DNA of 64,000 nt from Eutreptiella sp. 'Long Island Sound 2002' (lineage: Eukaryota > Protista > Euglenida): contig OZ038378.1 of NCBI GenBank assembly GCA_964036045.1, positions 30,814,001-30,878,000 of the forward strand, given 5' to 3'. The translations under genes were made by a program, and so were the position numbers. Below the pieces are notes generated by a model. It ran no database searches and was not told the origin of the DNA. It saw only the letters and a program-made list of their open reading frames with translations. Below are positions 1 through 64,000 of this stretch, one piece after another (the stretch's first letter is position 1; every line of letters starts with the position of its first letter).

Positions 1-1132
1 TTTAGGTTGATGTGGTCAATATCACATGTTGTGTGCAACACAGGTGTGCCGCACCAATGATGCAAGGAAGTTAGTCAAATGTCTTTGATGTAGAAATACT
101 TTTACACTCACAGCTGCCCTCACTCATGGCTACATGGCCACTTTCTGAACAAAGCCGCGCACGGCTACGGCCAGTTTGGCCCTGGTATTTTCAGAACATA
201 GAGCAATGTGAGGTCCAACCTCTTGTTTCTTTTTTGTGAGAGGTGGGTTAGCTTTCCTTACTTTTAGGGGTCTTGCGCGCCTTGAGGAGCTTCTGAACCC
301 TCTGCTTTGCGGTTAAGGGTCGTGGTCCTCGAGGCTCAGCCTTTGTTAGGCGTCGCGGGGGAGGGGGGTCTCGGGCTTGGGCTTTGGCTTGGCCTTGGGC
401 CCCACGAGGAGCTTAGCGGCATGCACGAGCCTTGGCCAACTTTTCGCGATCGAAGGTCTTGGGGTTGGTGGGAAGTGCTGCAACGGCCCGAAGAGGTGCC
501 CCTGATGCCGAGGATGGCAACTGAGGTGCCGGGGAGGCCAAAGATGGGGACTGAGGTGCCGGGGACGGCAACTGAGTTGGCCTAGAGATGGCTGATGGCA
601 ACCGCATGGGATGCCACAGAACTCCTTTGGCCTCCATTCCCATGGGTGGGTGAATGCATCCATCTCGCTGTAGGGGCTACATCTAAAGGGGTCGAAGCTA
701 GTTGCACAATGAGTACCTACAAAGAGCAATAGGTGCACCGGACAAGGGGGTATTGCACCAGTGATGCAATGCCGGCAGGAAGTTCGCTCCAAGCCAATAC
801 TGGTACATGGAGGAAACTTCAGGGGATATGCAGAAATTGACTGACACACACACGTGTCGTGTGGCGCCGGCGCTGAACATCGACAGATAGCGTTAACAGG
901 TGGTTCTGGCAGTAGTTACAGGCGGTTAGCGCCCGCGTTGCCAACTGGAAAGCCAAAATCGGCAAAAATGCAACCGGACTGCACACCGCTCGATGTGCCT
1001 CAAAAATGCGCATTCATCTGTGCAATCGAAAAAAAAAAAACTCCCTTGTAGCATAAATTTTTTCTGCGATGCGCACACGCGCGCCGCCGCGGGGCCCGCG
1101 CCTTTACACGCCCAGTTTGAAAATAATACAAA

Positions 1133-1159
1133 CTAGCCTTCAGCCCGCGCAAATGCGCG
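1133..1159 (-). terminator. Helitron 3' terminus, family B (GC hairpin + CTAG); further copies at 3085-3111, 5036-5062 and 6989-7017
   Basis: Minus strand reads CGCGCATTTGCGCG-GGCTGAAGG-CTAG|T. The 6989-7017 copy has the longer perfect hairpin CCCGCGC-ATTT-GCGCGGG, then CCGATTG-CTAG|T. A subterminal hairpin followed by CTRR and a T is the canonical Helitron 3' end. Confidence 0.85.
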
Positions 1160-1226
1160 CGTAGAAAATTTGGTGCTAGCATCCAATTTTTTCTGATAGA
1201 TGTTGTTGGCTTGAGCATTTAAGTTC

Positions 1227-1832
1227 ATGGCTACATTTAGATTTGAATTTAAATTCCACACTAATCGTACACTGATGGCAACATTTTACACTCACGGCTA
1301 TACTCATAGCTACCTTTTGCTCTCATGGCCACACTCCGGGCTACATTTTTTGCGCACCGCTACTCTCAAGGTTACATTCAAAACTCATGGCTACACCCAT
1401 GGCTACATTTTACGCTCATGGCTCCATTTTACACTTGGTCACACGTACGGCTACATGCGGTTGCATTTTTGCCCATTTTTGCTGTCCAATTGGCGACGCG
1501 GGCTACATGCCTACGCCCACTTATGCCTTAGGTCATGGTTACATTTTACGCTCATGGCTACACTGAGTGTTACATATTACACTCATGGCTACACTCACCC
1601 ATGGGTACATTTTGCACCCATGGTGGTAGGTACAGTTACTTTAACAATTACTTTTACAGCATACCCTTTACATGATACCTTTTACAGGATAGCATTTACA
1701 CATAGGGCTACACGTAGGGCTACATTTCACACCAACGGCTACACTCATGGCTACATTTTACACTCATGGCCACGCTCGGTGCCACATTTTACCTTCATGG
1801 CTACACTCACCCATAGCTACATTCTGCAATAG
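1227..1832 (+). repeat. Degenerate minisatellite (core ACTCATGGCTACA / CATGGCTACATTTTAC) inside each 1952-bp unit; copies at 3179-3784 and 5130-5735
   Basis: Many imperfect copies of catggctaca(c/t) are visible; this produces the spurious 'HGYTH' 201-aa ORFs. Confidence 0.85.
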
Positions 1833-4800
1833 TGGTTGCAAATACAATTACTTTTACGGATACAGTTACCGCATACGCTTTACTAAAATTTAAATGATAC
1901 ATGATAGCTTTTACATGCTCGCTTTAAGGTTTGGGTTCCCAACTTTGCATTTGTGCTTTAGGTTGATGTGGTCAATATCACATGTTGTGTGCAACACAGG
2001 TGTGCCGCACCAATGATGCAAGGAAGTTAGTCGATTGTCTTTGATGTAGAAATACTTTTACACTCACAGCTGCCCTCACTCATGGCTACATGGCCACTTT
2101 CTGAACAAAGCCGCGCACGGCTACGGCCAGTTTGGCCCTGGTATTTTCAGAACATAGAGCAATGTGAGGTCCAACCTCTTGTTTGTTTTTTTTTTGTTAG
2201 AGGTGGGTTAGCTTTCCTTAATTTTAGGGGTCTTGCGCGCCTTGAGGAGCTTCTGAACCCTCTGCTTTGCGGTTAAGGGTCGTGGTCCTCGAGGCTCAGC
2301 CTATGTTAGGCATCGCGGGGGAGGGGGGTCTCGGGCTTGGGCTTGGGCTTGGGCCCCACGAAGAGCTTCGCGGCATGCACGAGCCTTGGCCAACTTTTCG
2401 CGATCGAAGGTCTTGGGGTTGGTGGGAAGTGCTGCAACGGCCCGAAGAGGTGCCCCTGATGCCGAGGATGGCAAATGAGGTTCCGGGGAGGGCGGAGATG
2501 GGGACTGAGGTGCCGGGGACGGCAACTGAGTTGGCCTAGAGATGGCTGATGGCAACCGCATGGGATGCCACAGAACTCCTTTGGCCTCCATTCCCATGGG
2601 TGGGTGAATGCATCCATCTCGCTGTAGGGGCTACATCTAAAGGGGTCGAAGCTAGTTGCACAATGAGTACCTACAAAGAGCAATGGGTGCACCGGACAAG
2701 GGGGTATTGCACCAGTGATGCAATGCCGGCAGGAAGTTCGCTCCAAGCCAATACTGGTACATGGAGCAAACTTCAGGGGATTTGCAGAAATTGACTGACA
2801 CACACACGTGTCCTGTGGCGCCGGCGCTAAACATCGACAGATAGCGTTAACAGGTGGTTCTGGCAGTAGTTACAGGCGGTTAGCGCCCGCGTTGCCAACT
2901 GGAAAGCCAAAATCGGCGAAAATGCAACCGTACTGCACACCGCTCGATGTGCCTCAAAAATGCGCATTCATCTGTGCAATCGAAAAAAAAAACTCCCTTG
3001 TAGCATAAATTTTTTCTGCGATGCGCACACGCGCGCCGCCGCGGGGCCCGCGCCTTTACACGCCCAGTTTGAAAATAATACAAACTAGCCTTCAGCCCGC
3101 GCAAATGCGCGCGTAGAAAATTTGGTGCTAGCATCCAATTTTTTCTGATAGATGTTGTTGGCTTGAGCATTTAAGTTCATGGCTACATTTAGATTTGAAT
3201 TTAAATTCCACACTAATCGTACACTGATGGCAACATTTTACACTCACGGCTATACTCATAGCTACCTTTTGCTCTCATGGCCACACTCCGGGCTACATTT
3301 TATGCGCACCGCTACTCTCAAGGTTACATTCAAAACTCATGGCTACACCCATGGCTACATTTTACGCTCATGGCTCCATTTTACACTTGGTCACACGTAC
3401 GGCTACATGCGGTTGCATTTTCGCCCATTTTTGCTGTCCAATTGGCGACGCGGGCTACATGCCTACGCCCACTTATGCCTTAGGTCATGGTTACATTTTA
3501 CGCTCATGGCTACACTGAGTGTTACATATTACACTCATGGCTACACTCACCCATGGGTACATTTTGCACCCATGGTGGTAGGTACAGTTACTTTAACAAT
3601 TACTTTTACAGCATACCCTTTACATGATACCTTTTACAGGATAGCATTTACACATAGGGCTACACGTAGGGCTACATTTCACACCAACGGCTACACTCAT
3701 GGCTACATTTTACACTCATGGCCACGCTCGGTGCCACATTTTACCTTCATGGCTACACTCACCCATAGCTACATTCTGCAATAGTGGTTGCAAATACAAT
3801 TACTTTTACGGATACAGTTACCGCATACGCTTTACTAAAATTTAAATGATACATGATAGCTTTTACATGCTCGCTTTAAGGTTTGGGTTCCCAACTTTGC
3901 ATTTGTGCTTTAGGTTGATGTGGTCAATATCACATGTTGTGTGCAACACAGGTGTGCCGCACCAATGATGCAAGGAAGTTAGTCGATTGTCTTTGATGTA
4001 GAAATACTTTTACACTCACAGCTGCCCTCACTCATGGCTACATGGCCACTTTCTGAACAAAGCCGCGCACGGCTACGGCCAGTTTGGCCCTGGTATTTTC
4101 AGAACATAGAGCAATGTGAGGTCCAACCTCTTGTTTGTTTTTTTTTTGTTAGAGGTGGGTTAGCTTTCCTTAATTTTAGGGGTCTTGCGCGCCTTGAGGA
4201 GCTTCTGAACCCTCTGCTTTGCGGTTAAGGGTCGTGGTCCTCGAGGCTCAGCCTATGTTAGGCATCGCGGGGGAGGGGGGTCTCGGGCTTGGGCTTGGGC
4301 TTGGGCCCCACGAAGAGCTTCGCGGCATGCACGAGCCTTGGCCAACTTTTCGCGATCGAAGGTCTTGGGGTTGGTGGGAAGTGCTGCAACGGCCCGAAGA
4401 GGTGCCCCTGATGCCGAGGATGGCAAATGAGGTTCCGGGGAGGGCGGAGATGGGGACTGAGGTGCCGGGGACGGCAACTGAGTTGGCCTAGAGATGGCTG
4501 ATGGCAACCGCATGGGATGCCACAGAACTCCTTTGGCCTCCATTCCCATGGGTGGGTGAATGCATCCATCTCGCTGTAGGGGCTACATCTAAAGGGGTCG
4601 AAGCTAGTTGCACAATGAGTACCTACAAAGAGCAATGGGTGCACCGGACAAGGGGGTATTGCACCAGTGATGCAATGCCGGCAGGAAGTTCGCTCCAAGC
4701 CAATACTGGTACATGGAGCAAACTTCAGGGGATTTGCAGAAATTGACTGACACACACACGTGTCCTGTGGCGCCGGCGCTAAACATCGACAGATAGCGTT

Positions 4801-6988
4801 AACAGGTGGTTCTGGCAGTAGTTACAGGCGGTTAGCGCCCGCGTTGCCAACTGGAAAGCCAAAATCGGCAAAAATGCAACCGGACTGCACACCGCTCGAT
4901 GTGCCTCAAAAATGCGCATTCATCTGTGCAATCGAAAAAAAAAACTCCCTTGTAGCATAAATTTTTCTGCGATGCGAACACGCGCGCCGCCGCGGGGCCC
5001 GCGCCTTTACACGACCAGTTTGAAAAAAATAGAAACTAGCCTTCAGCCCGCGCAAATGCGCGCGTAGAAAATTTGGTGCTAGCATCCAATTTTTTCTGAT
5101 AGATGTTGTTGGCTTGAGCATTTAAGTTCATGGCTACATTTAGATTTGAATTTAAATTCCACACTAATCGTACACTGATGGCAACATTTTACACTCACGG
5201 CTATACTCATAGCTACCTTTTGCTCTCATGGCCACACTCCGGGCTACATTTTATACGCACCGCTACTCTCAAGGTTACATTCAAAACTCATGGCTACACC
5301 CATGGCTACATTTTACGCTCATGGCTCCATTTTACACTTGGTCACACGTACGGCTACATGCGGTTGCATTTTCGCCCATTTTTGCTGTCCAATTGGCGAC
5401 GCGGGCTACATGCCTACGCCCACTTATGCCTTAGGTCATGGTTACATTTTACGCTCATGGCTACACTGAGTGCTACATATTACACTCATGGCTACACTCA
5501 CCCATGGGTACATTTTGCACCCATGGTGGTAGGTACAGTTACTTTAACAATTACTTTTACAGCATACCCTTTACATGATACCTTTTACAGGATAGCATTT
5601 ACACATAGGGCTACTCGTAGGGCTACATTTCACACCAACCGCTACACTCATGGCTACATTTTACACTCATGGCCACGCTCGGTGCCACATTTTACCTTCA
5701 TGGCTACACTCACCCATAGCTACATTCTGCAATAGTGGTTGCAAATACAATTACTTTTACGGATACAGTTACCGCATACGCTTTACTAAAATTTCAATGA
5801 TACATGATAGCTTTTACATGCTCGCTTTAAGGTTTGGCTTCCCAACTTTGCATTTGTGCTTTAGGTTGATGTGGTCAATATCACATGTTGTGTGCAACAC
5901 AGGTGTGCCGCACCAATGATGCAAGGAAGTTAGTCAAATGTCTTTGATGTAGAAATACTTTTACACTCACAGCTGCCCTCACTCATGGCTACATGGCCAC
6001 TTTCTGAACAAAGCCCCGCACGGCTACGGCCAGATTGGCCCTGGTATTTTCAGAACATAGAGCAATGTGAGGTCCAACCTCTTGTTTGTTTTTTTTTGTG
6101 AGAGGTGGGTTAGCTTTCCTTACTTTTAGGGGTCTTGCGCGCCTTGAGGAGCTTTTGAACCCTCTGCTTTGCGGTTAAGGGTCGTGGTCCTCGAGGCTCA
6201 GCCTTTGTTAGGCGTCGCGGGGGAGGGGGGTCTCGGGCTTGGGCTTCACCTTGGGCCCCACGAAGAGCTTCGCGGCATGCACGAGCCTTGGCCAACTTTT
6301 CGCGATCGAAGGTCTTGGGGTTGGTGGGAAGTGCTGCAACGGCCCGAAGAGGTGCCCCTGATGCCGAGGATGGCAACTGAGGTGCCGGGGAGGGCGGAGA
6401 TGGGGACTGAGGTGCCGGGGACGGCGACTGAGTTGGCCTAGAGATGGCTGATGGCAACCGCATGGGATGCCACAGAACTCCTTTGGCCTCCATTCCCATG
6501 GGTGGGTGAATGCATCCATCTCGCTGTAGGGGCTACATCTAAAGGGGTCGAAGCTAGTTGCACAATGAGTACCTACAAAGAGCAATGGGTGCACCGGACA
6601 AGGGGGTATTGCACCAGTGATGCAATGCCGGCAGGAAGTTCGCTCCAAGCCAATACTGGTACATGGAGGAAACTTCAGGGGATTTGCAGAAATTGACTGA
6701 CTCACACACGTGTCGTGTGGCACCGGCGCTAAACATCGACAGATAGTGTGAACAGGTGGTTCTGGCAGTAGTTACAGGCGGTTAGCGCCCGCGTCGCCAA
6801 CTTGAAAGCCAAACTCGGCAAAAATGCAACCGGACTGCACACCGCTCGATGTGCCTCAAAAATGCGCATTCATCTGTGCAATCGAAAGAAGAAAACTCCC
6901 TTTGTAGCATAAATTTTTTCTGCGATGCGAACACGCGCGCCGCCGCGGGGCCCGCGCCTTTACACGACCAGTCTGAAATTAATAGAAA

Positions 6989-8347
6989 CTAGCAATCGGC
7001 CCGCGCAAATGCGCGGGTTGCAAACAAAATTTATAGAGTGATAGGGCCGCGTCCTCACAGTTGGGTATCCAGCCTACGCGGTGATCTTATCAGGGTGCAC
7101 TGGTCCCATGGGTAGGGATAGCAGAGGCTCCGCATTGATCTTGTTGTCGGCCCATCACTCTGGGTATGAGACGTTGAAGTTGGATGGCATGTACGGTGTG
7201 AACTGTGGAAGATCTGAGTCCAATATTTCCGGCCAAACAATGTTTTCAATGACCCCATAGTTGTTTGCGTCAACCTGCAAGTCCGCTGTTGTCCATACTT
7301 TGATAGCGCTTGAATTTCCGCAGCGCGATAGAGCAACATAAACTTGACCATGTGAAAACGGTCGGGTTGCCAATAAGAGACCCACTTTGGAAAACGTCTG
7401 ACCTTGGCTTTTGTTAATGGTCATACAGAAGGCTAACTTTACAGGCAATTGGCGACGAATGAATTTGATAGGGAGATCATCATCATCAGATACTCTGAGA
7501 TTAATCCGGGGTATGCAAACGGAGTTTCCCTTCTGTGTTCGTGCTAGCACCGTTGCTTGGATTGTGTAGCGAAGACACGAAGTAACACTCAATCGGGTGC
7601 CATTCATAAGGCCAGCAGCACGATTCAAGTTGCGGATGAGTATTATTGGTGCTCCAACCCTAAGATTGAGGCGATGTTGTGGCATTCCTGATGGGAGTAA
7701 TGTGTTTACGAACTCGTTTGGGTAAATGTTGGATTGGGCTTCAGAATCTTCGCCAAAAAAATCAGCTGACTCATAAACATGTAAATCACGGTTATGCCAC
7801 GATGACAACTGTGTGGCATGGGGCAACTGAGGCCGTGGGATGCCATAGACACTGCACTTCACTGTAGAGGCTACAATAAGGAAATGAAGCGACTTGCCGA
7901 CATGAATACCTACAAAGAGCACTGAGTGCACCGGACAGGGCAGTATTGCACCAGTGATGCAATGCCGGCAGGGAGTTCGCTCTAAGCCGCTCAGGGACAT
8001 AGAGGATCCTTAGGGGATTTGCAAAATATGACTGAAACATGTGCCATGCTGTGCAGCACCGGCGCTGGAGCTAGCAATAACATTGACGGATAGCGTTAAC
8101 AGGTGGTTCTTGCAGTAGTTACAGGCGGTTAGCGCCCGCTCGGCCAACTGAACAGCCAGAATCGGCGAAGATGCAACCGTACTGCACACCGATCGATGCG
8201 CCTCAAAATTGCGCATACATCTGTCAAATAAGAAAAAAAAAGACCGCCTTGTAGCATAGATTCTTTTCTGCGAGGCGCACACGTGCGCCGCGGCCAGGCC
8301 CGCGCCTGGACACGACGATGACGACCAGTCTGAAAATAATAGAAAGA
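6989..8347 (-). mobile_element. Non-autonomous Helitron (family B deletion derivative): 5' TC end, helicase C-terminal coding remnant and 3' hairpin-CTAG
   Basis: Minus strand starts TCTTTCTATTATTTTCAGACTGG at 8347 and ends hairpin+CTAG at 6989. 8347-~7800 is homologous to the 5' part of the 1952-bp unit; 7790-7155 encodes the PIF1 C-terminus. Confidence 0.85.
7155..7790 (-). pseudogene. 5'-truncated PIF1-family (SF1B) helicase C-terminal fragment from a second Helitron RepHel lineage
   Basis: Contains YPNEFVNTLLPSGMPQHRLNLRVGAPIILIRNLN, GLMNGTRL, RRQLPVKLAFCMTINKSQGQTF and FSHGQVYVALSR (PIF1 C-terminal motifs). It is clearly diverged from the family-A RepHel (RRQFPIKLAFALTINRSQGQSF); no Rep domain or N-terminal helicase motifs. 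Confidence 0.92.
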
Positions 8348-11300
8348 CTGGTGCGAATGCCCGCGCTTGAAGCGCGGGCCATATCACCATATCACCATAG
8401 CACCATATCTCACACCGCACCGCATTTCGCATACGCAATACAACACACCTGATGTCCCGTACCTCATATCCCGTGCCACATGACTCATGTCTCAAACATT
8501 ATGTCCCGTTGTACCGTACTCTATGAGTGAAACTTACCCCTCCTAAACTGTACTCTGACACCACATTTGACACCGCAATTCGCATAATCCATATTTACAA
8601 ACACATCACCCATACCTCACACTGTGTACAACATGCACATATCCCGTACCTCATGACTCATGTCTCAAACCTCATATCCCGTACTCTATGAGTGAAATTT
8701 ACCCCTCCCAAACTGTACTCTGACACCACATTTGACACCGCGATTCGCATAATCCATATTTCCAAACACATCACCGATACCTCACACTGTGTACAACATA
8801 CCGCATATCCCGTACCTCGTATCCCGTACCTCATGACTCATGTCTCAAACCTCATATCCCGTACTCTATAAGCGAGAGAACTGTCGCCACTGCTGCCTGT
8901 TGGCTAAAATCGCCAAAAGTCAACAGGCGGGATTCTTCGTGCGGATACCCGGATAATTGATTGTACAGTACATACAGGTTTCCAAAACACACGATTCCAT
9001 GATTTCAGATCGATTTCTCGTGCCAGAAATCGAAATCGCAAATCCGCCAGATGCCATTTGACGGGCACGCGCGCGCGCCAGCAGCAGCGTGCACAATTGG
9101 GAGGAATTTTTGCGTATGACGAACGACGACGAACGACTGAACGAACGAACGACGAACGAACGAACCATACCACAATTAAATGTAATTACTAGTGCGAATG
9201 CCCGCGCTTGAAGCACGGGCCATATCACCATATCACCATAGCACCATATCTCACACAGCACCGCATTTCACATACCCAATACAACACACCTCATGTCCCG
9301 TACCTCATATCCCGTGCCACCTGACTCATGTCTCAAACATCATATCCCGTACTCTATGAGTGAAACTTATCCCTCCTAAACTATACTCTGATAGCACATT
9401 TGACACCGCAATTCGCATAATCCATATTTCCAAACACATCACCCATACCTCACACTGTGTACAACATACCGCATATCCCGTACCTCGTATCCCGTACCTC
9501 ATGACTCATGTCTCAAACCTCATATCCCGTACTCTATAAGCGAGAGAATTGTCGCCACTGCTGCCTGTTGGCTAAAATCGCCAAAAGTGAACAGGCGGGA
9601 TTATTCGTGCAGATACCCGGATGATCGATTGTACAGTAATTACAGATTTTTAAAACACGTGATTTGATGATTTCAGATCAATTTGTCGTGCCAGAAATCG
9701 AAATCGCAAATCCGCCAGATGCCATTTGACGGGCACGCGCGCGCGCCAGCAGCAGCGTGCACAATTAGGAGGATTTTTTGGGTACGACGAACGACGACGA
9801 CGATGACGAACGACGACGAACGAACGAACGAACGAACGAACGAACGAACGAACCTTACCACAATTAAATATATTAACTAGTGCGAATGCCCGCGCTCGAA
9901 GCGCGGGCCATATCACCATATCACCATGGCACCACATCTCACACCGCACAACATTTCGCATACCCAATACAACCCACCTCATGTCCCGTACCTCATATAT
10001 CCCGTGCCACCTGACTCATGTCTCAAACATCATATCCCGTACTCTATGAGTGAAATTTACCCCTCCTAAACTGTATTTACCGTGCGAATGCCCGCGCTTG
10101 AAGCGCGGGCCATATCACCATATCACCATAGCACCATATCTCACACCGCACCGCATTTCACATACCCAATACAACACACCTCATGTCCCGTACCTCATAT
10201 CCCGTGCCACCTGACTCATGTCTCAAACATCATATCCCGTACTCTATGAGTGAAACCTACCCCTCCTAAATTGTACTCTGACACCACATTTGACACCGCG
10301 ATTCGCATAATCCATATTTCCAAACACATCACCCATGCCTCACACTGTGTACAACATACCGCATATCCCGTACCTCGTATCCCGTACCTCATGACTCATG
10401 TCTCAAACCTCATATCCCGTACTCTATAAGCGAGAGAACTGTCGCCACTGCTGCCTGTTGGCTAAAATCGCCAAAAGTCAACAGGCGGGATTATTCGTGC
10501 AGATACCCGGTTAATCGATTGTACAGTACATTCAGATTACATGAATCCATGATTTCAGATCGATTTGTCGTGCCAGAAATCGAAATCGCACATCCGCCAG
10601 ATGCCATTTGACGGGCACGCGCGCGCGCCAGCAGCAGCGTGCACAATTGGGCGGATTTTTTGGGTATGACGAACGACGACAACGACGACGACGAACCATA
10701 GCACAATTAAATATAATAACTAGTGCGAATGCCCGCGCTTGAAGCGCGGGCCATATCACCATGTCACCATAGCACCATATCTGACACCGCACCGCATTTC
10801 ACATACCCAATACAACACACCTCATGTCCCGTACCTCATATCCCGTGCCACATGACTCATGTCTCAAACATCATATCCCGTACTCTATGAGTGAAACTTA
10901 CCCCTACTAAACTGTACTCTGACAGCACATTTGACACCGCGATTCGCATAATCCATATTTCCAAACACATCACCCATACCTCACACTGTGTACAACATGC
11001 CGCATATCCCGTACCGGGTATCCCGTACCTCATGACTCATGTCCCAAACCTCATATCCCGTACTCTATAAGCGAGAGAACTGTACTCTACGAGTGACATT
11101 TACCCCTCCTAATAACTCATGTCTCAAACATCATATCCCGTACTCCATGAGTGAAATATACCCCTTCTAAGCTGTACTCTGACACCACATTTGACACCGC
11201 GATTCGCATAATCCATATTTCCAAACACATCACCCATACCTCACACTGTGTACAACATACCGCATGTCCCGTACCGGGTATCCCGTACCTCATGACTCAT

Positions 11301-15961: not shown

Positions 15962-15993
15962 CTAGTGTAAATGCCCGCGCTTGAAGCGCGGGC
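15962..15993 (-). terminator. 3' terminus of the large family-A Helitron (9-bp stem, 3-nt loop, 7 nt, CTAG); the second large copy has the same terminus at 34344-34375
   Basis: Minus strand reads GCCCGCGCT-TCA-AGCGCGGGC-ATTTACA-CTAG|T. The inward flank (plus strand ggccgtaccgac...) differs from the mini units (ggccatatcacc...). Confidence 0.9.
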
Positions 15994-49450: not shown

Positions 49451-49989
49451 GCAGTGGCTGCAGCATTCACCCCTCCAGAAGGCGTTTCACATTCGCGGTC
49501 CGCGTGCTCAGCACCGGCGATGTCCAAAGCGAGCAGAGCATTGGAAGCAGTCTTGACTTGGACTTCTGCAATGGAAGGGGGCACTGCCCAAGGTTGCAAT
49601 TCCTCGGGCCTCCATCAAGACGAAGGGTCCACCCAATCAGGCACGCAACTTACCAAATTCACTATCCCCTCCTTCGCTTTGCCCATCTCCACTTTCACCA
49701 GCGGTCGGGGGAGCTTGTGGTACTTTATACACAGATAGACAGGATGCGTCCTGGGCAAAATCGCCGAGGACATTCTTCGAATGCATGAGTACTAATGGAA
49801 TTCATGAATGTTAAGTTACAAACTTCAAAAGGAATGTCGGTGCCTAACGAAGCCAAAGAAAAATGAACAACTTCACCAACGCATGCTTCAAATGGCCTGT
49901 TGTTTTTCAACACCCACATTGGATGTCACGGACATCACTGTTTTGACCACCAGGCACCATTCGGGTACCAACCAATTTGCTGCTTTTCT

Positions 49990-50436
49990 TCAGTCGTCTT
50001 CATCCCATTCTCTTTCATCATCGCAGGAAAGGTCGATTGAAGAATCATCGGAGCACCAATCCGAGTTATATTCGGATCGGTGGTAGCAGCCGGATCCACT
50101 TCCGTAATCAACGCGTACTCCATCTTCCGCAAGCTGGGTGCATTGAGAACATGCACATTGTTCTCCACCCAGCAATTGACAGTGTTGGTTGCGAATCGCC
50201 CACCCAAGGCAATACCAACATGGCCTTGGGTCTCCAGGGTAACATCCGGCACATAATTTTGCCGCCACTTCCCGGATTTTCGGTAATCCCATCCGCCGTG
50301 CCTTTTGGTGCACTTGATCATGGCCAATGGGACTTTCGACATCGATATAGTCCAGCGGTCTCTTCTCTTCCTCCGTTCCTTGAAGAAGTGGGGGAGCCCA
50401 GCTTGGCAACGAAGCTGATGGTTGAGCCCGAGGCAT
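49990..50436 (-). CDS. 148-aa Cys-rich ORF with an acidic tail (CAGC..CWYC..CxCSQC); intact inverted copy at 54853-55305 (+), truncated copy at ~23500-23624
   Basis: The frame is open in two diverged copies with Cys spacing conserved; unknown family. Confidence 0.4.
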   Translation of the reverse strand: MPRAQPSASLPSWAPPLLQGTEEEKRPLDYIDVESPIGHDQVHQKARRMGLPKIREVAAKLCAGCYPGDPRPCWYCLGWAIRNQHCQLLGGEQCACSQCTQLAEDGVRVDYGSGSGCYHRSEYNSDWCSDDSSIDLSCDDEREWDEDD

Positions 50437-52178: not shown

Positions 52179-52580
52179 CACCCTGGATTGCAAAAGCCCA
52201 CATAACACAGGATCTAAACTACAGAGCAGCAGGCAATTTGCATTGGGCAGATTTTAATGAAAACGTACAAAGCACACATTCACATTTGAATCCCACAACG
52301 AATGTCCTGGCCATTGATAAATCAGATCCAATTTCATAGTTCATGTGCCATGATGGCCACGACTGCAAGAACCAAATACACACCCTGGATTGCAAAAGCC
52401 CACATAACACAAGATCTAAACTACAGAGCAGCAGGCAATTTGCATTGGGCAGATTTTAATGAAAACGTACAAAGCACACATTCACATTTGAATCCCACAA
52501 CGACTGTCCTGGCCATTGATAAATCAGATCCAATTTCATAGTTCATGTGCCATGATGGCCACGACTGCAAGAACCAAATA
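52179..52580 (+). repeat. 202-bp tandem duplication
   Basis: caccctggattgcaaaagcccacataacac occurs at ~52179 and ~52381; single copy in Helitron copy 1 (~26005-26205). Confidence 0.88.
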
Positions 52581-54762
52581 GACTTCCTTTTACGCCTCAG
52601 CCTCCCCATTTTCAGCCGCAGCGTCCGTCATCTCCGTGTCGGGTTCTGCGGCTGGAGCCTCCTCAGCAGCAGCCTCTTCAGCAACAGCCTCTTCCTCGGT
52701 GGCAGGGGCAGCCTCTTCCTCAGCAGCAGCCTCTTCTGCTAGCCCGTCCTCTGTAGTTTCCTCGCCGTCCTCTGCCATGGGTTCATCGTCCTTCTTCATC
52801 TCAGCAAGGGGCTCAGGTTTAGGTTCAGGAGGCAAATCAATATGCTTTTCTTCAACCACTGTGTAACTGGCCAACCTATGAAAAGCAGGGAAATGACAGC
52901 CCTTCACAAACACTGTGCGTGGATGCACCGTCGAATCCTGGAGGCTGGCTGCCTGCTTGGCTTTGTCAAGACCACCAATCACCGCCCCATAGCCACAAAA
53001 CTGTTTTTGCATGGTGTCGGCATACATGCACAGGGAATGAGTTACCCAACCAGCGAAGCACCTCTGTTTGAGAGCAAACGGCAGACAGAAGTCTGCAAAT
53101 CATGATGACCCAAAACCCCCAACTGATATAAGCAGGGGGGGGGGGGGGTCTGAGCCTGATGCTCACCCATGCAGAGCCCTTCCCCCTCCCCACTGCGAAT
53201 AGCCGTGAAACCCAAAACCTGGCACCCACAGGTGCTGAATCCAGCTCGTTCCCACCCCCTTGACTCCAGTGCCACCCACCATAAGCAAAAGTCTGAACCA
53301 ATTACGTATACGATTTGCCAGAGCGATGCAGGTGGTCAAGGAGAAAAGAATTCAACTTCAGCAATCATGTGCTGCTGAGATGATACAGAACACAATCTGG
53401 GTTGAATGGGGAGGAAATAACAAGCAGTGCCAAGACATGGAGGGAACTGGCGAGTGCCAAAATTACAGGGCCAAAGACACCAGCATACCCCATCCAATTG
53501 ATCTATGAGGGTGTGCTGTGCAGCTCAAATGAGAACGCGCAGAGGACAAGCAACCTTACTGCACCTCAGGCACTCAAACTTGTTTGAAATGCACCATTGA
53601 ACCACCCCCCCCCATCCCCCACCAGAGCAATGCGGATCACTGCAGGCAGATGTCCAGGGCACGAACACGCGATCAGAAGCACCTCCAACATATGTCGCGT
53701 GGAATTTAGCGTGTACTCCCCGATCCACCCAGAGCAGCATGCCATGGTAACTCCAGTTGGGACCCTCAGAGCAGCATGCCATGGTAACTCCAGTTGGGAC
53801 CCTCAAGCCCTCCTTGCTCGGGTCTGATGCGGTCCAGCAGGGTAATGATCTCCACCGCCACAATTGACCTGGAAGGGTTTTCCTCGTGGTACTGGCCATC
53901 CAAACTCTCCAATTTGATATCCTCGGCTTCAACTGTGTGAAATAAAAGCAGCTGTTGGCGAGAGGAAAAAAAAAGGCAAAGAATGCAAAGCTGCTCAATC
54001 CCTTGTCCTCTTGCAAAATTCACCGACCTTCCTGAATGGGAGAGGTAACATGAGTAGGTATAGCGAGACCGAGATGTGGAAATGAGGTGTGGCAGCCACA
54101 TTCAACTGCGGGAGGTATAGCGAGACCGAGATGTGGAAATGAGGTGTGGCAGCCACATTCAACTGCGGGAGCTTGAGTTGGTTCAGGGCTATGCTGCTGA
54201 CCAACCTCGAGCAAAAAAAAAAAAGGCACGAACCTCTTTGATGCAAATGTGGAAGAAGTAGCTAGTTGCAAAGTATCATGAAATTGCACAGCTCTGTCTT
54301 TGCGGTTTAGTGGGGGGGGGGGGGGGGATTTGGCATGACGCCATGGTGTGATGATCTCGTCTGCAGCTGGCGGCGCCTACTGGCCGATCGCCATTCGCTG
54401 CCCTTCCCTTGGACCCTTTCCCTCCATAGGCGGTGGTGCCCATCAGCTTCTCACCACCCTTTGACCTTCCTCTTCCTCCTTGCCCTAACCTTCCCTCTCC
54501 CCTCCCCTTTCCCTTCCCTTAGCCTTTCCCTCTGTAGGCCACCGTGCCCATCGGCCTCACCACACTCCTTCCCTTCCCTTACCCTTGGTCGGTTGTGCCA
54601 ACGGAGCCCCCGGACTTGCCCTGTTTCACTTCTCTGCGTCGAGTCCACGCAGAGGAAGGCAAATGCCTTCGCCGTTGGCCAGGTGCGTCCAAGCGGCCAT
54701 CCCAAGCCGGCGGTGAGGTACCTCTCCCCAACGGCGGCTGGTGGGCCCTGGGATGGCCACTT

Positions 54763-55945: not shown

Positions 55946-56743
55946 TTCCCTTGGACCCTTTCTCTCCATAGGCGGTGGTGCCCATCAGCCCATCTGCCCA
56001 TCTGCGGGAGGTATAGCGAGACCGAGATGTGGAAATGAGGTGTGGCAGCCACATTCAACTGCGGGAGCTTGAGTTGGTTCAGGGCTATGCTGCTGACCCA
56101 CCTCGAGCAAAAAAAAAAGGCACGAACCTCTTTGATGCAAATGTGGAAGAAGTAGCTGGTTGCAAAGTATCAATTGCACAGCTCTGTCTTTGCGGTTTAG
56201 TGGGGGGGGGGGGGGGATTTGGCATGACGCCATGGTGTGATGATCTTGTCTGCAGCTGGCGGCGCCTACTGGCCGATCGCCATTCGCTGCCCTTCCCTTG
56301 GACCCTTTCCCTCCATAGGCGGTGGTGCCCATCAGCTTCTCACCACCCTTTGACCTTCCTCTTCCTCCTTGCCCTAACCTTCCCTCTCCCCTCCCCTTTC
56401 CCTTCCCTTGGCCTTTCCCTCTGTAGGCCACCGTGCCCATCGGCCTCACCACACTCCTTCCCTTCCCTTTCCCTTGGTCGGTTGTGCCAACGGAGCCCCC
56501 GGACTTGCCCTGTTTCACTTCTCTGCGTCGAGTCCACGCAGAGGAAGGCAAATGCCTTCGCCGTTGGCCAGGTGCGTCCAAGCGGCCATCCCAAGCCGGC
56601 GGTGAGGTACCTCTCCCCAACGGCGGCTGGTGGGCCCTGGGATGGCCACTTGCGGGGGGGGGGGGGGCAAATGTCCCTGGATGACTGCAAACAACGGAGG
56701 GGAGGGGTAAGGGGGGTATTTGCCTACTTTCGTATTTGCGTAC

Positions 56744-57386
56744 CTGCATTTGCTTGAAAGAGACGGAAATCTCCTCTTTTTCTGCAGCAGCCCCCATTAC
56801 TTGCTTCAACGTGGCAAGCGCCGTCTCACAAGTCTCACGAATGTCATCATAAATAATCTCGTCGACGCCCCTTTCAAGGACGGGCTTCAGAATTGGGATG
56901 AATTGCATGGCATCTCTGCAAAGTTTTTCGTGATGCGTTGTTTCTCGTCAGCATGCTGATTCCCAACCTCACAATATGTTCGCAACGTCAACCACGGGCA
57001 AACGTGCAGCCTCAAAAACGATCTTCGACAACTGGCGTCGTTGCTTCACTCCTTGCGGCTTTTACAAACATACAAGTAACGCACGAAAACCCAGCACAAC
57101 AAAAGTGGCGAAACCCTGGGTCAACGACCAATTTGCAAAGATTGCCAATGACAAGAGCTGCTTTCTGCTTGAATTCTGCCTTCCGCTCCATCGTTCTGCG
57201 ACGGAGCATAGGGCAAAGTAACCCCAATGTGGGCGCATCAACGGTTGAAACGAACGTGGTCATCACAAGCTTGTTAAGTGCCTCGGTCGTTTTGCCGACT
57301 GGATCAGTGTAAGCGGTAATAATGAATCCCATAATGGGCTTCACGTCGGGATTCGCGATGGTGTCGTTGCACACATCCTTGAACAC
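56744..57386 (-). pseudogene. Captured two-exon fragment of an eEF3/GCN1-like HEAT-repeat gene
   Basis: Exon 57386-57115 (acceptor tttcaaag|), a 199-bp GT..AG intron 57114-56916, exon 56915-56744 (donor CAG|gtacgc). Splicing is in frame: TIANPDVKPIMGFIITAYTDP..TTFVSTVDAPTLGLLCPMLRR..KAALVIGNLCKLVVDPGDAMQFIPILKPVLE..IRETCETALATLKQV, matching the eEF3 (TTFV..NMCKLVEDP) and GCN1 (TTFVxSVDAPSL) HEAT segment as I recall them. Confidence 0.75.
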
Positions 57387-57849
57387 CTTTGAAAGGCAGA
57401 AGCACAAGGAGAGAGCACACTCCATACTCCGTTGCCCGTTTTTACAGCGTAGCCACAACGGTTGTTGAATGGACCACGCGGAAACACGGAAAGTACAGAA
57501 ATTGAATAGGGAGTTGCACAATGAGCAAGGCCAGCATGAAGTGAGAATGGACGACCAAAATGGAAGCACAGGGATGGACAGAGGTCAAAAGGGAAGAAGA
57601 AGATGGAATTCCAGCGACGTGTTTGTCTGGCGGGAGAGATTATCAAGCAACTGGTGCTCATGGGAAACAATCAATGGGACCCGTGAACCTATTTGAGGAA
57701 AACTTGGGCGTCCATTAATTGACAGGGGATTGTGTACTTCAAGGTTAGGCAACTCCATGCCCAACTGCGAGAGAAAGTCGAAAACGCACGCGAAACTTCA
57801 GGGTGATAGGTGCTGAATATCAGCAGTTGAGGTTCCACCTTTTAGGTGC

Positions 57850-60800
57850 CTGCAGGTCCAGGAAATCCTCAGACGAGAACGCACAAACGCATTGGCAACT
57901 GACCTGTTTCAACCAGCGGCGACACAAAAAGGGTGTAGAGGAACACCTGCACTGCGCAGCAAACTGTCCACCTCGCGTTGCGTCAACTCCCCAAGAGCAT
58001 ACAGAACACCCTCAATAATATCACGTCGAATCTGCCCAGAGGCCCCCGTGGGTTTGTCAAAATAGTACAATGGCGCTGCCAGCCCCACATTCACGTGCGT
58101 CGTGGTCTGCTTCATAATACGATATCCGCGTGCCCGGTCCTCCTCATCCTGAACCTTTCGCTTTGCCTCTTCATCCTCTCGCTTGGCCTTCAAATCCTTC
58201 TCCCATTTCTTGCGGTCCTCCTCCTGCTTCGCTTTCATTTCCTCCATTTCGCTTCAGCTTCGGCCTTCGCACGCACCTATGAAAAGCAGGGAAGTGACAG
58301 CCCTTCACAAACACTGTGCGTGGATGCACCGTCGAATCCTGGAGGCTGGATGATGCGTGTACATGGCGTTAGCGCAAATCACAGTCGATTCCCCCTTCCA
58401 CTTGCACCTCTTTTCTCTTCTTCACCTCCTCTCACCCATTTGTTGAACAAGGGACCATGAGAAGCAAACTTGTGGACTTACGTGCTGTTGATTTCTATTC
58501 CAAACCCGATTTCCATGTGCAACCCATGTATCCAAAGAGGAAGAAGGTCGGTCACATTGACATGAACCCTTTTTCGGTCTTCGCTAGGACAAGAAGGAAT
58601 CGCTACTTGCTTAGATGAGTCCGAGCTTCCACATTTCCCTCCAAGCCATCACTGGAAAAATTGGCAACGACGAAAAAAGTTATCAGGCTACAAATCCGGT
58701 CGATACCTGAGTCCATGTTGGGAAGGTTTGCAAACTTGACGCATTTGATGGGGCCCATGGTAATTTGTTAGTTGAACGACTCCGACGGCCCACTGGGAGA
58801 CATTTGAAACAAACGCACGACACCTTGTTGCTGTTGATTATTTTTTCGTTGAACTTGCAAAAAGGGTGTAGAGGAACACCTGCACTGCGCAGCAAACTGT
58901 CCACCTCGCGTTGCGTCAACTCCCCAAGAGCATACAGAACACCCTCAATAATATCACGTCGAATCTGCCCAGAGGCCCCCGTGGGTTTGTCAAAATAGTA
59001 CAATGGCGCTGCCAGCCCCACATTCACGTGCGTCGTGGTCTGCTTCATAATACGATATCCGCGTGCCCGGTCCTCCTCATCCTGAACCTTTCGCTCTGCC
59101 TCTTCCTCCTCTCGCTTAGCCTTCAAATCCTCCTCCCGTTTCTTGCGGTCCTCCTCCTGCTTCGCTTTCATTTCCTCCATTTATTTGGCTTTCGCTTCAG
59201 CTTCGGCCTTCGCACGGTCCTATGAAAAGCAGGGAAGTGACAGCCCTTCACAAACACTGTGCGTGGATGCACCGTCGAATCCTGGAGGCTGGATGATGCG
59301 TGAACATGGCGTTAGCGCAAATCACAGTCGATTCCCCCTTCCACTTGCACCTCTTTTCTCTTCTTCACCTCCTTCCACCCATTTGTTGAACAAGGGACCA
59401 TGTGAAGCAAACTTGTGGACTTACGTGCTGTTGATTTCTATTCCAAACCCGATTTCCATGTGGAACCCATGTATCCAAAGAGGAAGAAGGCATGCATTTT
59501 CGAAGTTCGGTCACATTGACATGAACCCTTTTTCGGTCTTCGCTAGGGCAAGAAGGAATCGCGACTTGCTTAGATGAGTCCGAGCTTCCACATTTCCCTC
59601 CAAGCCATCACTGGAAAAATTGGCAACGACGAAAAAGTTATCAAGCTACAAATCCGGTCGATACCTGAGTCCATGTTGGGAAGGTTTGCAAACTTGACGC
59701 ATTTGATGGGGCCCATGTAAATTTGTTAGTTGAACGACTCCGACGGCCCACTGGGAGACATTTGAAACAAACGCACGACAAACGATGGAGGGCATGCTGT
59801 GCAGAGAGGTTCAGGGTACCAAACAATGTTGTGCAGAGGTTCGGAAAAGGCTGAATTTTAAAAACATTCTATTGCCTTTGGCAAGACCACCTCAGGTCCA
59901 GGAAATCCTCGGACGACAACACACAAACGCATTGGCAACCGACCAGTTTCAACCAGCGGCGACACAAAAAGGGTGTAGAGGAACACCTGCACTGCGCAGC
60001 AAACTGTCCACCTCACGTTACGTCAACTCCCCAAGAGCATGCAGAACACCCTCAATAATATCACGTCGAATCTGCCCAGAGGCCCCCATGGGTTTGTCAA
60101 AATATTGGAATGGCGCTGCCAGCTCCTCGTTCACGTGCGTCATAGTCTGCTTCACAATACGATATCCGCGTGCCCGGTCCTCCTCATCCTGAACCTTTCG
60201 CTCTGCCTCTTCCTCCTCTCGCTTAGCCTTCAAATCCTCCTCCCGTTTCTTGCGGTCCTCCTCCTGCTTCGCTTTCATTTCCTCCATTTCTTTGGCTTTC
60301 GCTTCAGCTTCGGCCTTCGCACGCTCCTATGAAAAGCAGGGAAGTGACAGCCCTTCACAAACACTGTGCGTGGATGCACTGTCGAATCCTGGAGGCTGGA
60401 TGATGCGTGAACATGGCGTTAGCGCAAATCACAGTCGATTCCCCCTTCCACTTGCACCTCTTTTCTCTTCTTCACCTCCTTCCACCCATTTGTTGAACAA
60501 GGGACCATGAGAGGCAAACTTGTGGACTTACGTGCTGTTGATTTCTATTCCAAACCCGATTTCCATGTGGAACCCATGTATCCAAAGAGGAAGAAGGCAT
60601 GCATTTTCGAAGTTCGGTCACATTGACATGAACCCTTTTTCGGTCTTCGCTAGGGCAAGAAGGAATCGCTACTTGCTTAGATGAGTCCGAGCTTCCACAT
60701 TTCCCTCCAAGCCATCACTGGAAAAATTGGCAACGACGAAAAAGTTATCAAGCTACAAATCCGGTCGATACCTGAGTCCATGTTGGGAAGGTTTGCAAAC

Positions 60801-63215
60801 TTGACGCATTTGATGGGGCCCATGGTAATTTGTTAGTTGAACGACTCCGACGGCCCACTGGGAGACATTTGAAACAAACGCACGACAAACGATGGAGGGC
60901 ATGCTGTGCAGAGAGGTTCAGGGTACCAAACAATGTTGTGCAGAGGTTCGGAAAAGGCTGAATTTTAAAAACATTCTATTGCCTTTGGCAAGACCACCTC
61001 AGGTCCAGGAAATCCTCGGACGACAACACACAAACGCATTGGCAACCGACCGGTTTCAACCAGCGGCGACACAAAAAGGGTGTAGAGGAACACCTGCACT
61101 GCGCAGCAAACTGTCCACCTCACGTTACGTCAACTCCCCAAGAGCATGCAGAACACCCTCAATAATATCACGTCGAATCTGCCCAGAGGCCCCCATGGGT
61201 TTGTCAAAATATTGGAATGGCGCTGCCAGCTCCTCGTTCACGTGGGTCATAGTCTGCTTCACAATACGATATCCGCGTGCCCGGTCCTCCTCATCCTGAA
61301 CCTTTCGCTCTGCCTCTTCCTCCTCTCGCTTAGCCTTCAAATCCTCCTCCCATTTCTTGCGGTCCTCCTCCTGCTTCGCTTTCATTTCCTCCATTTATTT
61401 GGCTTTCGCTTCAGCTTCGGCCTTCGCACGCACCTATGAAAAGCAGGGAAGTGACAGCCCTTCACAAACACTGTGCGTGGATGCACCGTCGAATCCTGGA
61501 GGCTGGATGATGCGTGAACATGGCGTTAGCGCAAATCACAGTCGATTCCCCCTTCCACTTGCACCTCTTTTCTCTTCTTCACCTCCTTCCACCCATTTGT
61601 TGAACAAGGGACCATGAGAAGCAAACTTGTGGACTTACGTGCTGTTGATTTCTATTCCAAACCCGATTTCCATGTGGAACCCATGTATCCAAAGAGGAAG
61701 AAGGCATGCATTTTCGAAGTTCGGTCACATTGACATGAACCCTTTTTCGGTCTTCGCTAGGGCAAGAAGGAATCGCTACTTGCTTAGATGAGTCCGAGCT
61801 TCCACATTTCCCTCCAAGCCATCACTGGAAAAATTGGCAACGACGAAAAAGTTATCAAGCTACAAATCCGGTCGATACCTGAGTCCATGTTGGGAAGGTT
61901 TGCAAACTTGACGCATTTGATGGGGCCCATGGTAATTTGTTAGTTGAACGACTCCGACGGCCCACTGGGAGACATTTGAAACAAACGCACGACAAACGAT
62001 GGAGGGCATGCTGTGCAGAGAGGTTCAGGGTACCAAACAATGTTGTGCAGAGGTTCGGAAAAGGCTGAATTTTAAAAACATTCTATTGCCTTTGGCAAGA
62101 CCACCTCAGGTCCAGGAAATCCTCGGACGACAACACACAAACGCATTGGCAACCGACCGGTTTCAACCAGCGGCGACACAAAAAGGGTGTAGAGGAACAC
62201 CTGCACTGCGCAGCAAACTGTCCACCTCACGTTACGTCAACTCCCCAAGAGCATGCAGAACACCCTCAATAATATCACGTCGAATCTGCCCAGAGGCCCC
62301 CATGGGTTTGTCAAAATATTGGAATGGCGCTGCCAGCTCCTCGTTCACGTGGGTCATAGTCTGCTTCACAATACGATATCCGCGTGCCCGGTCCTCCTCA
62401 TCCTGAACCTTTCGCTCTGCCTCTTCCTCCTCTCGCTTAGCCTTCAAATCCTCCTCCCATTTCTTGCGGTCCTCCTCCTGCTTCGCTTTCATTTCCTCCA
62501 TTTATTTGGCTTTCGCTTCAGCTTCGGCCTTCGCACGCACCTATGAAAAGCAGGGAAGTGACAGCCCTTCACAAACACTGTGCGTGGATGCACCGTCGAA
62601 TCCTGGAGGCTGGATGATGCGTGAACATGGCGTTAGCGCAAATCACAGTCGATTCCCCCTTCCACTTGCACCTCTTTTCTCTTCTTCACCTCCTTCCACC
62701 CATTTGTTGAACAAGGGACCATGAGAAGCAAACTTGTGGACTTACGTGCTGTTGATTTCTATTCCAAACCCGATTTCCATGTGGAACCCATGTATCCAAA
62801 GAGGAAGAAGGCATGCATTTTCGAAGTTCGGTCACATTGACATGAACCCTTTTTCGGTCTTCGCTAGGGCAAGAAGGAATCGCGACTTGCTTAGATGAGT
62901 CCGAGCTTCCACATTTCCCTCCAAGCCATCACTGGAAAAATTGGCAACGACGAAAAAGTTATCAAGCTACAAATCCGGTCGATACCTGAGTCCATGTTGG
63001 GAAGGTTTGCAAACTTAACGCATTTGATGGGGCCCATGGTAATTTGTTAGTTGAACGACTCCGACGGCCCACTGGGAGACATTTGAAACAAACGCACGAC
63101 AAACGATGGAGGGCATGCTGTGCAGAGAGGTTCAGGGTACCAAACAATGTTGTGCAGAGGTTCGGAAAAGGCTGAATTTTAAAAACATTCTATTACCTTT
63201 GGCAAGACCACCTCA
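57850..63215 (-). repeat. Tandem array, 1107-bp period (~5 units, the first two variant), each carrying a captured exon
   Basis: Repeated ORFs start at 59785, 60892, 61999 and 63106 (+1107 each); variant units at ~57850 and ~58860. Confidence 0.93.
58824..59219 (-). pseudogene. Captured 396-bp phase-0 exon: coiled coil plus a CCAR1/EMB1579-like degenerate EF-hand; repeated in each 1107-bp unit
   Basis: Acceptor cttttcatag| at 59220 and donor AACAAG|gtgtcg at 58824/58823. The peptide HVNEELAAPFQYFDKPMGASGQIRRDIIEGVLHALGELTQREVDSLLRSAG resembles the CCAR1-family C-terminal motif (..ELLxAFxxFD..G...D...IL..LG..LS.REV..L) from memory. An in-frame TAA occurs in some copies (59181-59183), but GAA in the ~60290 copy. 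Confidence 0.55.
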
Positions 63216-64000
63216 CAGAGAATCCACCACCAGCAATGCACTGTGTTCAACCCTGAAAAAAAAAACCGTCTTTATGCGTACGTTGCTGAGCAAGCAAGCA
63301 AGCTGAGCAAACGGCGAAAGAAAGTGCGGTGAAACCAGCACGCACAGTTTTCAGAACACACTGTTTGTTCGATACCTGCGGCCGCGCATCACAAAGGCAG
63401 TATCAAACCACGACGTCGTTGCGAACGTTGCTGCTGACGGCTGTCATACCTCGTTTCACAGGCAGGCACTTCAGCGGGGCAACACACCCAGGGACACACA
63501 CAGGACATACCACTCTGGGATCTGCCGCTGTTGGCATCTTCCACAATTGGATCAGCATATCCTCCCCCACGGAACCAAGCTGAGCAAACGGCGAAAGAAA
63601 GTGCGGTGAAACCAGCACGCACAGTTTTCAGAACACACTGTTTGTTCGATACCTGCGGCCGCGCATCACAAAGGCAGTATCAAACCACGACGTCGTTGCG
63701 AACGTTGCTGCTGACGGCTGTCATACCTCGTTTCACAGGCAGGCGCTTCAGCGGGGCAACACACCCAGGGACACACACAGGACATACCACTCTGGGATCT
63801 GCCGCTGTTGGCATCTTCCACAATTGGATCAGCATATCCTCCCCCACGGAACCAAGCTGAGCAAACGGCGAAAGAAAGTGCGGTGAAACCAGCACGCACA
63901 GTTTTCAGAACACACTGTTTGTTCGATACCTGCGGCCGCGCATCACAAAGGCAGTATCAAACCACGACGTCGTTGAGAACGTTGCTGCTGACGGCTGTCA

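Follow-up and report, generated by a model that had tools for sequence, protein, structure and literature searches.

A stretch of 64,000 nucleotides from the genome of the euglenid Eutreptiella sp. 'Long Island Sound 2002' (contig OZ038378.1, positions 30,814,001 to 30,878,000; hereafter, the window) is one long head-to-tail chain of Helitrons, large and small, that run in the same direction. The anatomy of this chain, its polarity, the precision of its junctions, the sharing of multi-unit blocks between contigs, and the interstitial positions of related arrays are direct observations. We assign a probability of roughly 55% to the interpretation that the window belongs to an island of Helitron concatemers whose blocks were copied by the Helitron machinery and subsequently reshaped by unequal crossing-over.

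Architecture and polarity of the window

An initial annotation of the window recognized 17 3' ends of one Helitron family (family A) and four of another (family B), all on the minus strand, and our analysis confirmed these counts, the strand, the junctions, and the size classes. Self-comparison of the window yielded 387 direct repeat pairs and 4 inverted repeat pairs, and coding sequence for the Helitron transposase (RepHel) was on the minus strand throughout. The mixture of mini elements, 2-kb units, and RepHel giants that had been described agrees with the sizes observed here, which were 641-1091 bp for minis, 1951-1953 bp for family-B units, and 14.1 kb and >29.6 kb for the two autonomous copies. 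The description of the chain as 'strictly unidirectional' holds for every terminus but not for one internal segment, which is inverted (54755-55924). Similarly, the claim that no host DNA separates the elements is accurate in that ~97% of the window is Helitron-cluster repeat, but a ~1-kb fragment of an elongation-factor-3 (EF3) gene is present inside one element. Altogether, 1.7 kb of the window matched neither other clusters nor another part of the window, with 56654-57631 as the largest portion. A scan of the whole window against Rfam returned no match. GC skew is strong in the mini arrays (approximately -0.33 on the plus strand at 8001-16000 and 30001-34000), which indicates that the Helitron sense strand is G-rich.

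Termini and junctions in the window

The minus strand contains 17 instances of the family-A hairpin (GCCCGCGCTTCAAGCGCGGGC), where shuffled sequences predict 0; when the non-palindromic tail (CATTCGCACTAG) is scored as well, all 17 remain on the minus strand and the plus strand has 0. When folded as DNA, the hairpin has a 9-bp stem and a 3-nt loop, with the stem ending 11 nt before the terminus (-13.4 kcal/mol, z=-4.1); the hairpin at 33264 carries 3 mismatches. The last bases of the family-A ends are 34344, 33253, 32419, 31762, 30907, 30045, 15962, 15090, 14443, 13561, 12698, 11617, 10720, 10079, 9877, 9189, and 8348. CTAG is present at 15 of these 17 ends; the end at 8348 reads CCAG, and that at 10079, which lacks CTAG, belongs to a partial unit in which CACGGT is joined to AAATACAG. 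The four family-B ends (GCGCGCATTTGCGCGGGC...GCTAG), at 6989, 5036, 3085, and 1133, are likewise on the minus strand and have a hairpin stem of 5-7 bp. As a control, searching for any GC-rich hairpin with CTRR after it, irrespective of family, recovered 13 minus-strand sites and 2 unrelated plus-strand sites. Families A and B are considered distinct because their helicase tails are only 48% identical.

Inspection of the junctions bore out the proposal that each 3' end is joined directly to the 5' end of the next element. The family-A 5' motif (ATATTTAATTGTG[C/G]TATGG) lies within 2-16 nt after 14 of the family-A ends, separated from them by a linker rich in T, A, or TC, and the 5' end of autonomous copy 1 adjoins the family-A end at 30045. 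Family-B 5' sequence directly follows the family-B ends. At 8348, a family-A end is followed by TC and the family-B 5' sequence TTTCTATTATTTTCAGACTGG, as had been annotated (CCAG fused to TC), and the same A-to-B adjacency recurs at 18366 of L004, one of the additional loci described below.

Arrays elsewhere in the genome

The window was compared to 20 other loci (L001-L020) on 15 contigs of 0.48-7.8 Mb in the ENA metagenome assembly ERZ25074135, which were reached via RepHel proteins or, for ten loci, via a 37-aa peptide encoded by the minis. RepHel proteins in this assembly are 96% identical to those of the window (66 cluster members, of which the 30 listed are on 16 contigs). The 20 loci share a layout in which an autonomous element is followed by an array of 0.65-1.1-kb minis. 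Autonomous family-A elements range from 12 (~12.4 in L005) to >22 kb across loci and, in the window and in L002-L005 and L007, maintain the order family-A 5' motif, segments X, Y, and Z, RepHel, and hairpin-CTAG, with optional accessory open reading frames (ORFs) upstream of RepHel. Co-oriented minis follow every sampled RepHel, and the ten loci reached via the mini peptide are all arrays, with 4-21 ends each and no solo copy. Across loci, 207 of 208 family-A ends are co-oriented and 1 is inverted. Thus, the sampled loci do not show the dispersed solo insertions in random orientation that the initial annotation had named as the contrary outcome.

The junctions at these loci are also precise. 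The family-A 5' motif was detected within 45 nt after 175 of the 208 family-A 3' ends. Among 161 non-redundant junctions, CTAG is present in 143, and three linkers account for 110 (TTATT in 51, TTAAT in 36, and TT in 23). The identity of the linker corresponds to the subtype of the unit that follows it, with TTATT accompanying GTGC in 48 of 51 cases and TTAAT accompanying GTGG in 28 of 37. The linker is therefore the 5' end of the following unit itself rather than filler or target DNA, and the junctions are precise end-to-end joins. Nearly all junctions have a T after CTAG, and most in-array units begin with TTATT, TTAAT, or TT straight after CTAG and not with TC. Solo 5' ends begin with TC(TC)n (L005, L014, L017, and L019), and the family-B 5' end at 8347 of the window begins with TC. 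Canonical Helitrons insert between a host A and a host T without target-site duplication. The solo 5' flank in L019 ends in A; in the other solo cases, a (TC)n run lies next to the 5' flank and the boundary is not fixable. One and the same sequence, ending in GGAATGGCTATGCAGGACTC, lies directly beside the (TC)n start of the autonomous element at L005 2580, L014 4629, and L017 5900, on different contigs, and this could be a repeated neighbor such as the end of a long terminal repeat (LTR), a preferred target, or part of a still longer unit.

The 16 sampled arrays whose positions were evaluated lie 18 kb to ~2 Mb from the nearer end of their contigs and have long stretches of sequence on either side, although these contigs may not be whole chromosomes. 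The parallel that had been drawn to the HeT-A/TART telomere arrays therefore does not hold: all 16 arrays are interstitial, which rules out a terminal array of that kind. Moreover, the concept of a unidirectional chromosomal domain stands for polarity within arrays but not across a domain. On ctg10694, arrays occur on both strands ~85 kb apart, showing that polarity belongs to the array and not to a domain of the chromosome. In 12 of the 16 arrays the 3' ends face away from the closer end of the contig and in 4 they face it, a difference that is not significant (two-sided binomial p ~0.08). On the three contigs checked, RepHel copies of the same contig were confined to one region (18-77 kb on ctg10697 and 78-206 kb on ctg10694; ctg10966 has a single copy).

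LTR retrotransposons abut or interrupt arrays in L001 (658-9121), L007 (23582-25001), L011 (14096-19150), L013 (18279-20114), and L014 (16758-20114), with a chromodomain present in the copies of L007, L011, L013, and L014, and the array in L020 adjoins a MULE transposase. With such neighbors, the arrays sit in mixed transposon islands, which are possibly heterochromatin. The L014 array is also flanked by a CCZ1 homolog, the sole host gene that proved informative. Its nearest named relative (51% identity) is a transcript from the euglenid Chasmostoma nieuportense, which is weak evidence as to the host, since the match is distant and the single-cell transcriptome may include prey. It is conceivable, but in our estimation doubtful, that the concatemer islands are regional centromeres or another heterochromatic domain present once per chromosome and renewed by an active rolling-circle transposon that copies polar multi-unit blocks. 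The interstitial arrays, the many Mb-scale contigs, the confinement of RepHel to a region of at most 190 kb on three contigs, and the nearby chromodomain LTR elements are compatible with such a role. If true, chromosome domains would be built by a rolling-circle element.

Origin and growth of the arrays

Head-to-tail concatemers are expected from rolling-circle transposition, and most described Helitrons are solo. We infer that RepHel-driven copying, rather than recombination alone, moves blocks among the arrays sampled here. In the mechanism that we propose, every unit would keep a start signal and a stop signal, such that any 5' end could serve RepHel as a nicking site and any hairpin-CTAG downstream of it as a terminator. 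Alternatively or in addition, rolling-circle copying of circular intermediates may run past a terminator. By either route, several units joined head to tail, including RepHel with its minis and A with B, would be copied in a single piece, and polarity would thereby be kept automatically. Arrays in place would then behave like satellites, with unequal crossing-over altering unit number and generating higher-order repeats and local tandems.

Several observations bear on this mechanism. Multi-unit blocks are common to different contigs at up to 98% identity, and the junction of RepHel with the first minis is collinear over 6-8 kb in L001, L003, L005, L007, and L009. Likewise, a ~16-kb block of the window (56.0 to 39.7 kb) is collinear with L009 on contig ctg9847 at 96-98.6% identity, indicating that stretches that appear unique in the window are internal Helitron sequence. 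Within the window, self-comparison identified a four-unit block common to the two mini arrays (12585-15989 and 29922-33280). Units of the same locus are not each other's closest kin (25 label changes, compared to 29 when shuffled), and the arrays therefore did not arise from purely local duplication. Local expansion is also evident. Identical units in L001 form a repeating 880+650 pattern (a higher-order repeat), and the window has local tandems of X (two copies), Y (five copies), and family-B units (four copies), with the B, Y, and 277-bp tandems being 98-99% identical (1-7015, 57849-63215, and 63299-64000, respectively). Of the interpretation that had been proposed, a co-oriented polymer of two families is supported, but 'directed, iterative growth' unit by unit is not what the junctions show, since linkers are inherited with the downstream unit and blocks recur across loci.

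Other observations weigh against copying by the Helitron machinery. No transposition event, circle, or empty site was seen in the sampled data, and ectopic recombination or segmental duplication alone could account for the sharing of blocks between contigs. The canonical 5' TC is missing at most in-array junctions; exact circularization of the Helraiser type would give CTAG followed by TC. Termini were not clearly better conserved than the unit interior in a comparison that was biased by the picking of units, both RepHel genes of the window are broken, and the 208 family-A ends are poorly independent given that blocks are copies of each other. Since no transposition was seen, recombination alone is a rival to be taken seriously. 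In its fullest form, this rival holds that the arrays are a satellite that is merely Helitron-like, in which one ancient head-to-tail pair was amplified and then spread between chromosomes by unequal crossing-over, gene conversion, and segmental duplication, with no current role for RepHel. The higher-order repeats and identical neighboring units in L001, a multi-unit stretch of L013 that aligns in several registers within its array, the 98-99% identical tandems of the window, an X-X junction without a 3' end (see below), and unit divergence that is alike within and between loci are all consistent with such a satellite. Nonetheless, we regard it as somewhat unlikely, given that arrays occur on at least 15 contigs with differing flanks (LTR elements, a MULE, and the CCZ1 gene), that every unit retains both termini, and that several RepHel ORFs are intact. 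In addition, the presence of the 16-kb block on another contig at 98% identity points to recent movement of a Helitron-bounded unit.

A role for transposition could also take the form of serial self-targeted insertion, in which units transposed singly beside an existing 3' end and direction was set by the target or by the replication fork, as in the single-strand IS200/IS605 elements. Neighboring units are usually not closest relatives and are of differing subtypes and size classes, and some junctions read CTAG-TTA-TC..., fitting insertion between the A and T inside TTATT. However, of the 11 units that have TTA+TC at the 5' junction, just 3 have CTAG-TT at the 3' junction, compared to a background of ~15%, which reveals no association, and slippage of TTATC/TAT can yield linker differences such as the (TTATC)n of L004. 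Serial insertion is also difficult to reconcile with the few junction types, which are inherited with the downstream unit, and with multi-unit blocks that are common to several loci, and we consider it improbable. Finally, over-expansion or mis-joining of repeats during assembly could affect the copy number of the 98-99% identical tandems, which are easily misassembled, and a search with the 1655-aa ORF of copy 2 did not recover the contig that holds the window. As an explanation of the window as a whole, however, an assembly artefact is highly improbable: minis differ from each other by 5-12% and in length, their junctions are distinct, and the layout is repeated in 20 independently assembled loci with 32-52x coverage. 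Block copying by the Helitron machinery followed by unequal crossing-over remains the interpretation that we favor.

Autonomous family-A elements

Based on its sequence features, family A is a canonical Helitron. The RepHel of family A matched the Pfam domains Helitron_like_N (E=3e-50), PIF1 (E=2e-62), and Pif1_2B. The RepHel of copy 2 matched the structure of the Helraiser transposase, 7LCC, at E=3e-210; LPHAHIL of copy 2 aligned with the HUH motif of Helraiser, and YLHEYIYKG aligned with its two catalytic tyrosines. Intact RepHel ORFs of 1803-1875 aa were identified at other loci. Affiliation with Helitron2/Helentron was considered and rejected, as there were 0 inverted copies of the family-A 5' motif in all sampled loci and no endonuclease domain was detected in RepHel with Pfam. 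The features of the window are compiled in the table below; broken RepHel copies and the EF3-like fragment were searched ORF piece by ORF piece, unjoined.

Table. Helitron-derived features of the 64,000-nucleotide window, listed from the 5' to the 3' direction of the elements (HSP, high-scoring segment pair; TRF, Tandem Repeats Finder).
Feature	Position	Strand	Basis or remarks
Copy 2, 5'-proximal part	57632..64000	-	TRF, self-BLAST; 5' terminus beyond window
277-bp tandem in copy 2	63299-64000	-	TRF, self-BLAST
1107-bp Y tandem, ~5 copies	57849-63215	-	TRF, self-BLAST
Y segment of copy 2	57632-58371	-	Y upstream of RepHel, same order in L002, L004, L005, L007
EF3-like gene fragment inside copy 2	56654..57631	-	HEAT piece in ORF 57012-57569
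Inverted internal Helitron segment	54755..55924	+	Part of Z usually just upstream of RepHel; only opposite-direction piece
Internal region of long autonomous variant	41493..54078	-	Z-type segments, accessory ORFs
Accessory ORF, broken	43072-44858	-	Weak GRF zinc-ribbon match, below Pfam cut-off
242-aa ORF, no known domain	42168-42896	-	Upstream of copy 2 RepHel
Copy 2 RepHel	35237..40869	-	One frameshift near 35905-35920; ORFs of 1655 and 222 aa; tblastn with intact P0125
Copy 2 3' terminus	34344..34375	-	9-bp-stem hairpin and 11 nt ending in CTAG
Mini array 2	30045..34343	-	Five complete family-A non-autonomous units: 1091, 834, 657, 855, 862 bp
Copy 1, whole	30044 to 15962 (14.1 kb)	-	X duplicated
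Copy 1 5' end, X in tandem (2 x 1385 bp)	27276..30044	-	Family-A 5' motif opens each X
Z segment of copy 1	23501..26618	-	Conserved, non-coding, upstream of RepHel; same order and orientation in L002-L005, L007, L009
Copy 1 RepHel	16852..23081	-	Broken into four ORFs: 482, 230, 387, 1123 aa
Copy 1 3' terminus	15962..15993	-	Hairpin, then CTAG
Mini array 1	8348..15961	-	872, 647, 882, 863, 1081, 897, 641, 202 (partial), 688, 841 bp
Internally deleted B element	6989..8347	-	TC TTTCTATTATTTTCAGACTGG, then C-terminal helicase remnant (ORF 7155-8000), then B hairpin-CTAG
B non-autonomous tandem array	1..6988	-	Three complete 1951-1953-bp units and one cut by window edge

In copy 1, the two X segments meet at 28658 in a junction that has a 5' end without a 3' end. 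The arrays of Xiong, Dooner and Du are reportedly of the form 'many 5' ends, one 3' end', which this tandem resembles. A coding tandem repeat of 48-57 bp was observed in the N-terminal part of RepHel, at 21136-21937 in copy 1 (57-bp) and at 39531-39966; its copy number varies between RepHel copies, and it sits where the RepHel of copy 1 is broken.

Copy 2 represents a long autonomous variant. The broken accessory ORF of this variant is intact in L009 (P0149; 448 aa, 27 cluster members), where it is ~1.8 kb upstream of an intact 1830-aa RepHel, and the accessory ORFs of the long variant in L009 lie within 10001-12251. Pfam searches of 20-odd accessory and flanking ORFs detected only the HEAT piece of EF3 and the GRF zinc ribbon, the latter weakly and below the cut-off. 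The inverted segment yielded opposite-strand HSPs to L004, L005, L006, L007, and L009 with 89-96% identity. The EF3-like fragment occupies the sole sizeable stretch of the window without a match elsewhere. Its HEAT piece matched Pfam PF24984 (E=1.3e-13, 51.5 bits, cut-off 27), no ABC domains were found following this piece, and the fragment appears to be split into pieces. By sequence, it is probably a captured fragment of a host gene.

Non-autonomous units

Minis share with autonomous family-A elements just ~130 nt at the 5' end, which are also the first ~130 nt of X, and ~33 nt at the 3' end. They fall into size classes near 650 and 850 bp, and their length differences result from the copy number of an internal subrepeat of 165-260 bp. 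Each complete mini of array 2 runs from the 5' motif to hairpin-CTAG, and it is the last mini of array 1 that ends in CCAG. These traits are ordinary for non-autonomous Helitrons. The 202-bp partial unit of array 1 is recurrent, with the same odd junction in which the hairpin and CATTCGCACGGT are followed by AAATACAG at 10079 of the window, L002 16674, L003 18864, 19751, and 22951, L014 11753, and L019 10251, 11988, and 13623. This is a rearranged unit that was propagated in its own right.

The complete family-B units are 96-98% alike, and each is flanked by family-B 5' and 3' ends. Their internal 1.5 kb was not recovered from the other sampled loci. Each family-B unit also has a 201-aa ORF on the plus strand, opposite to the element (1227-1832, 3179-3784, and 5130-5735), with no Pfam match.

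Comparison to known systems

Family A resembles canonical Helitrons, such as Helitron1 and the Helraiser element of Myotis, in encoding a RepHel with an HUH motif, two tyrosines, and a Pif1-like helicase, in having a 5' TC at solo ends, a 3' CTAG preceded at ~11 nt by a GC hairpin, and a captured gene fragment, in lacking terminal inverted repeats, and in giving rise to short derivatives that retain only the ends. It differs from canonical Helitrons, of which most described copies are solo insertions, in that nearly every copy sampled here is in an array and in-array 5' ends are mostly TTAWT.

The statement in the initial annotation that tandem arrays and Helitron-derived satellites are known has real precedent but understates it, as both plant-centromere concatemers and subtelomeric arrays in Hydractinia have been published. 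Tandem Helitron insertions are on record for bat, Drosophila, rice, and maize, and rolling-circle concatemers have been invoked to explain tandem truncated Helitrons in plant centromeres (PMC5148889; PMC11934779, citing Xiong, Dooner & Du 2016). The arrays analyzed here are like the plant-centromere arrays in being head-to-tail, and their co-oriented units with direct end-to-end junctions fit the concatemers proposed there. However, the plant-centromere arrays are described as truncated and decayed, whereas here complete units with both termini, autonomous copies with intact or near-intact RepHel, and two families are chained.

In Hydractinia symbiolongicarpus, subtelomeric Helitron-like arrays are present at both ends of nearly all chromosomes (PMC11934779). 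As in Eutreptiella, these tandem arrays consist of one Helitron subfamily, their units vary in length and contain a subrepeat, and they occupy defined chromosome regions, but the Hydractinia arrays are at chromosome ends while those sampled here are interstitial in contigs. The arrays also share with Helitron-derived satellites (DINE-TR1 in Drosophila) non-autonomous units and internal tandem repeats that expand into satellite-like arrays. Helitron fragments at the telomeres of D. biarmipes are degraded and randomly oriented and include no full-length element (PMC6581046), in contrast to the uniform orientation and full-length elements observed here.

The HeT-A, TART, and TAHRE elements of Drosophila are retrotransposons that are added to chromosome ends. 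Like them, the Eutreptiella elements form polar head-to-tail arrays of autonomous and non-autonomous members; unlike them, they belong to the rolling-circle DNA transposons, and their arrays lie inside contigs.

The published tandem arrays that we traced are described as truncated or degraded. In contrast, almost every copy sampled from this genome, in a family that seems to have been active recently, appears to be maintained in a clean, co-oriented concatemer of complete units. It therefore offers a natural system for the choice of Helitron start and stop signals, for read-through of multiple termini that moves blocks and captures genes, and for the transition from transposon to satellite. 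Collectively, the arrays are a cleaner variant of known tandem arrays, with complete termini, autonomous copies within the chain, two families, and near-absolute polarity in the sampled genome loci.

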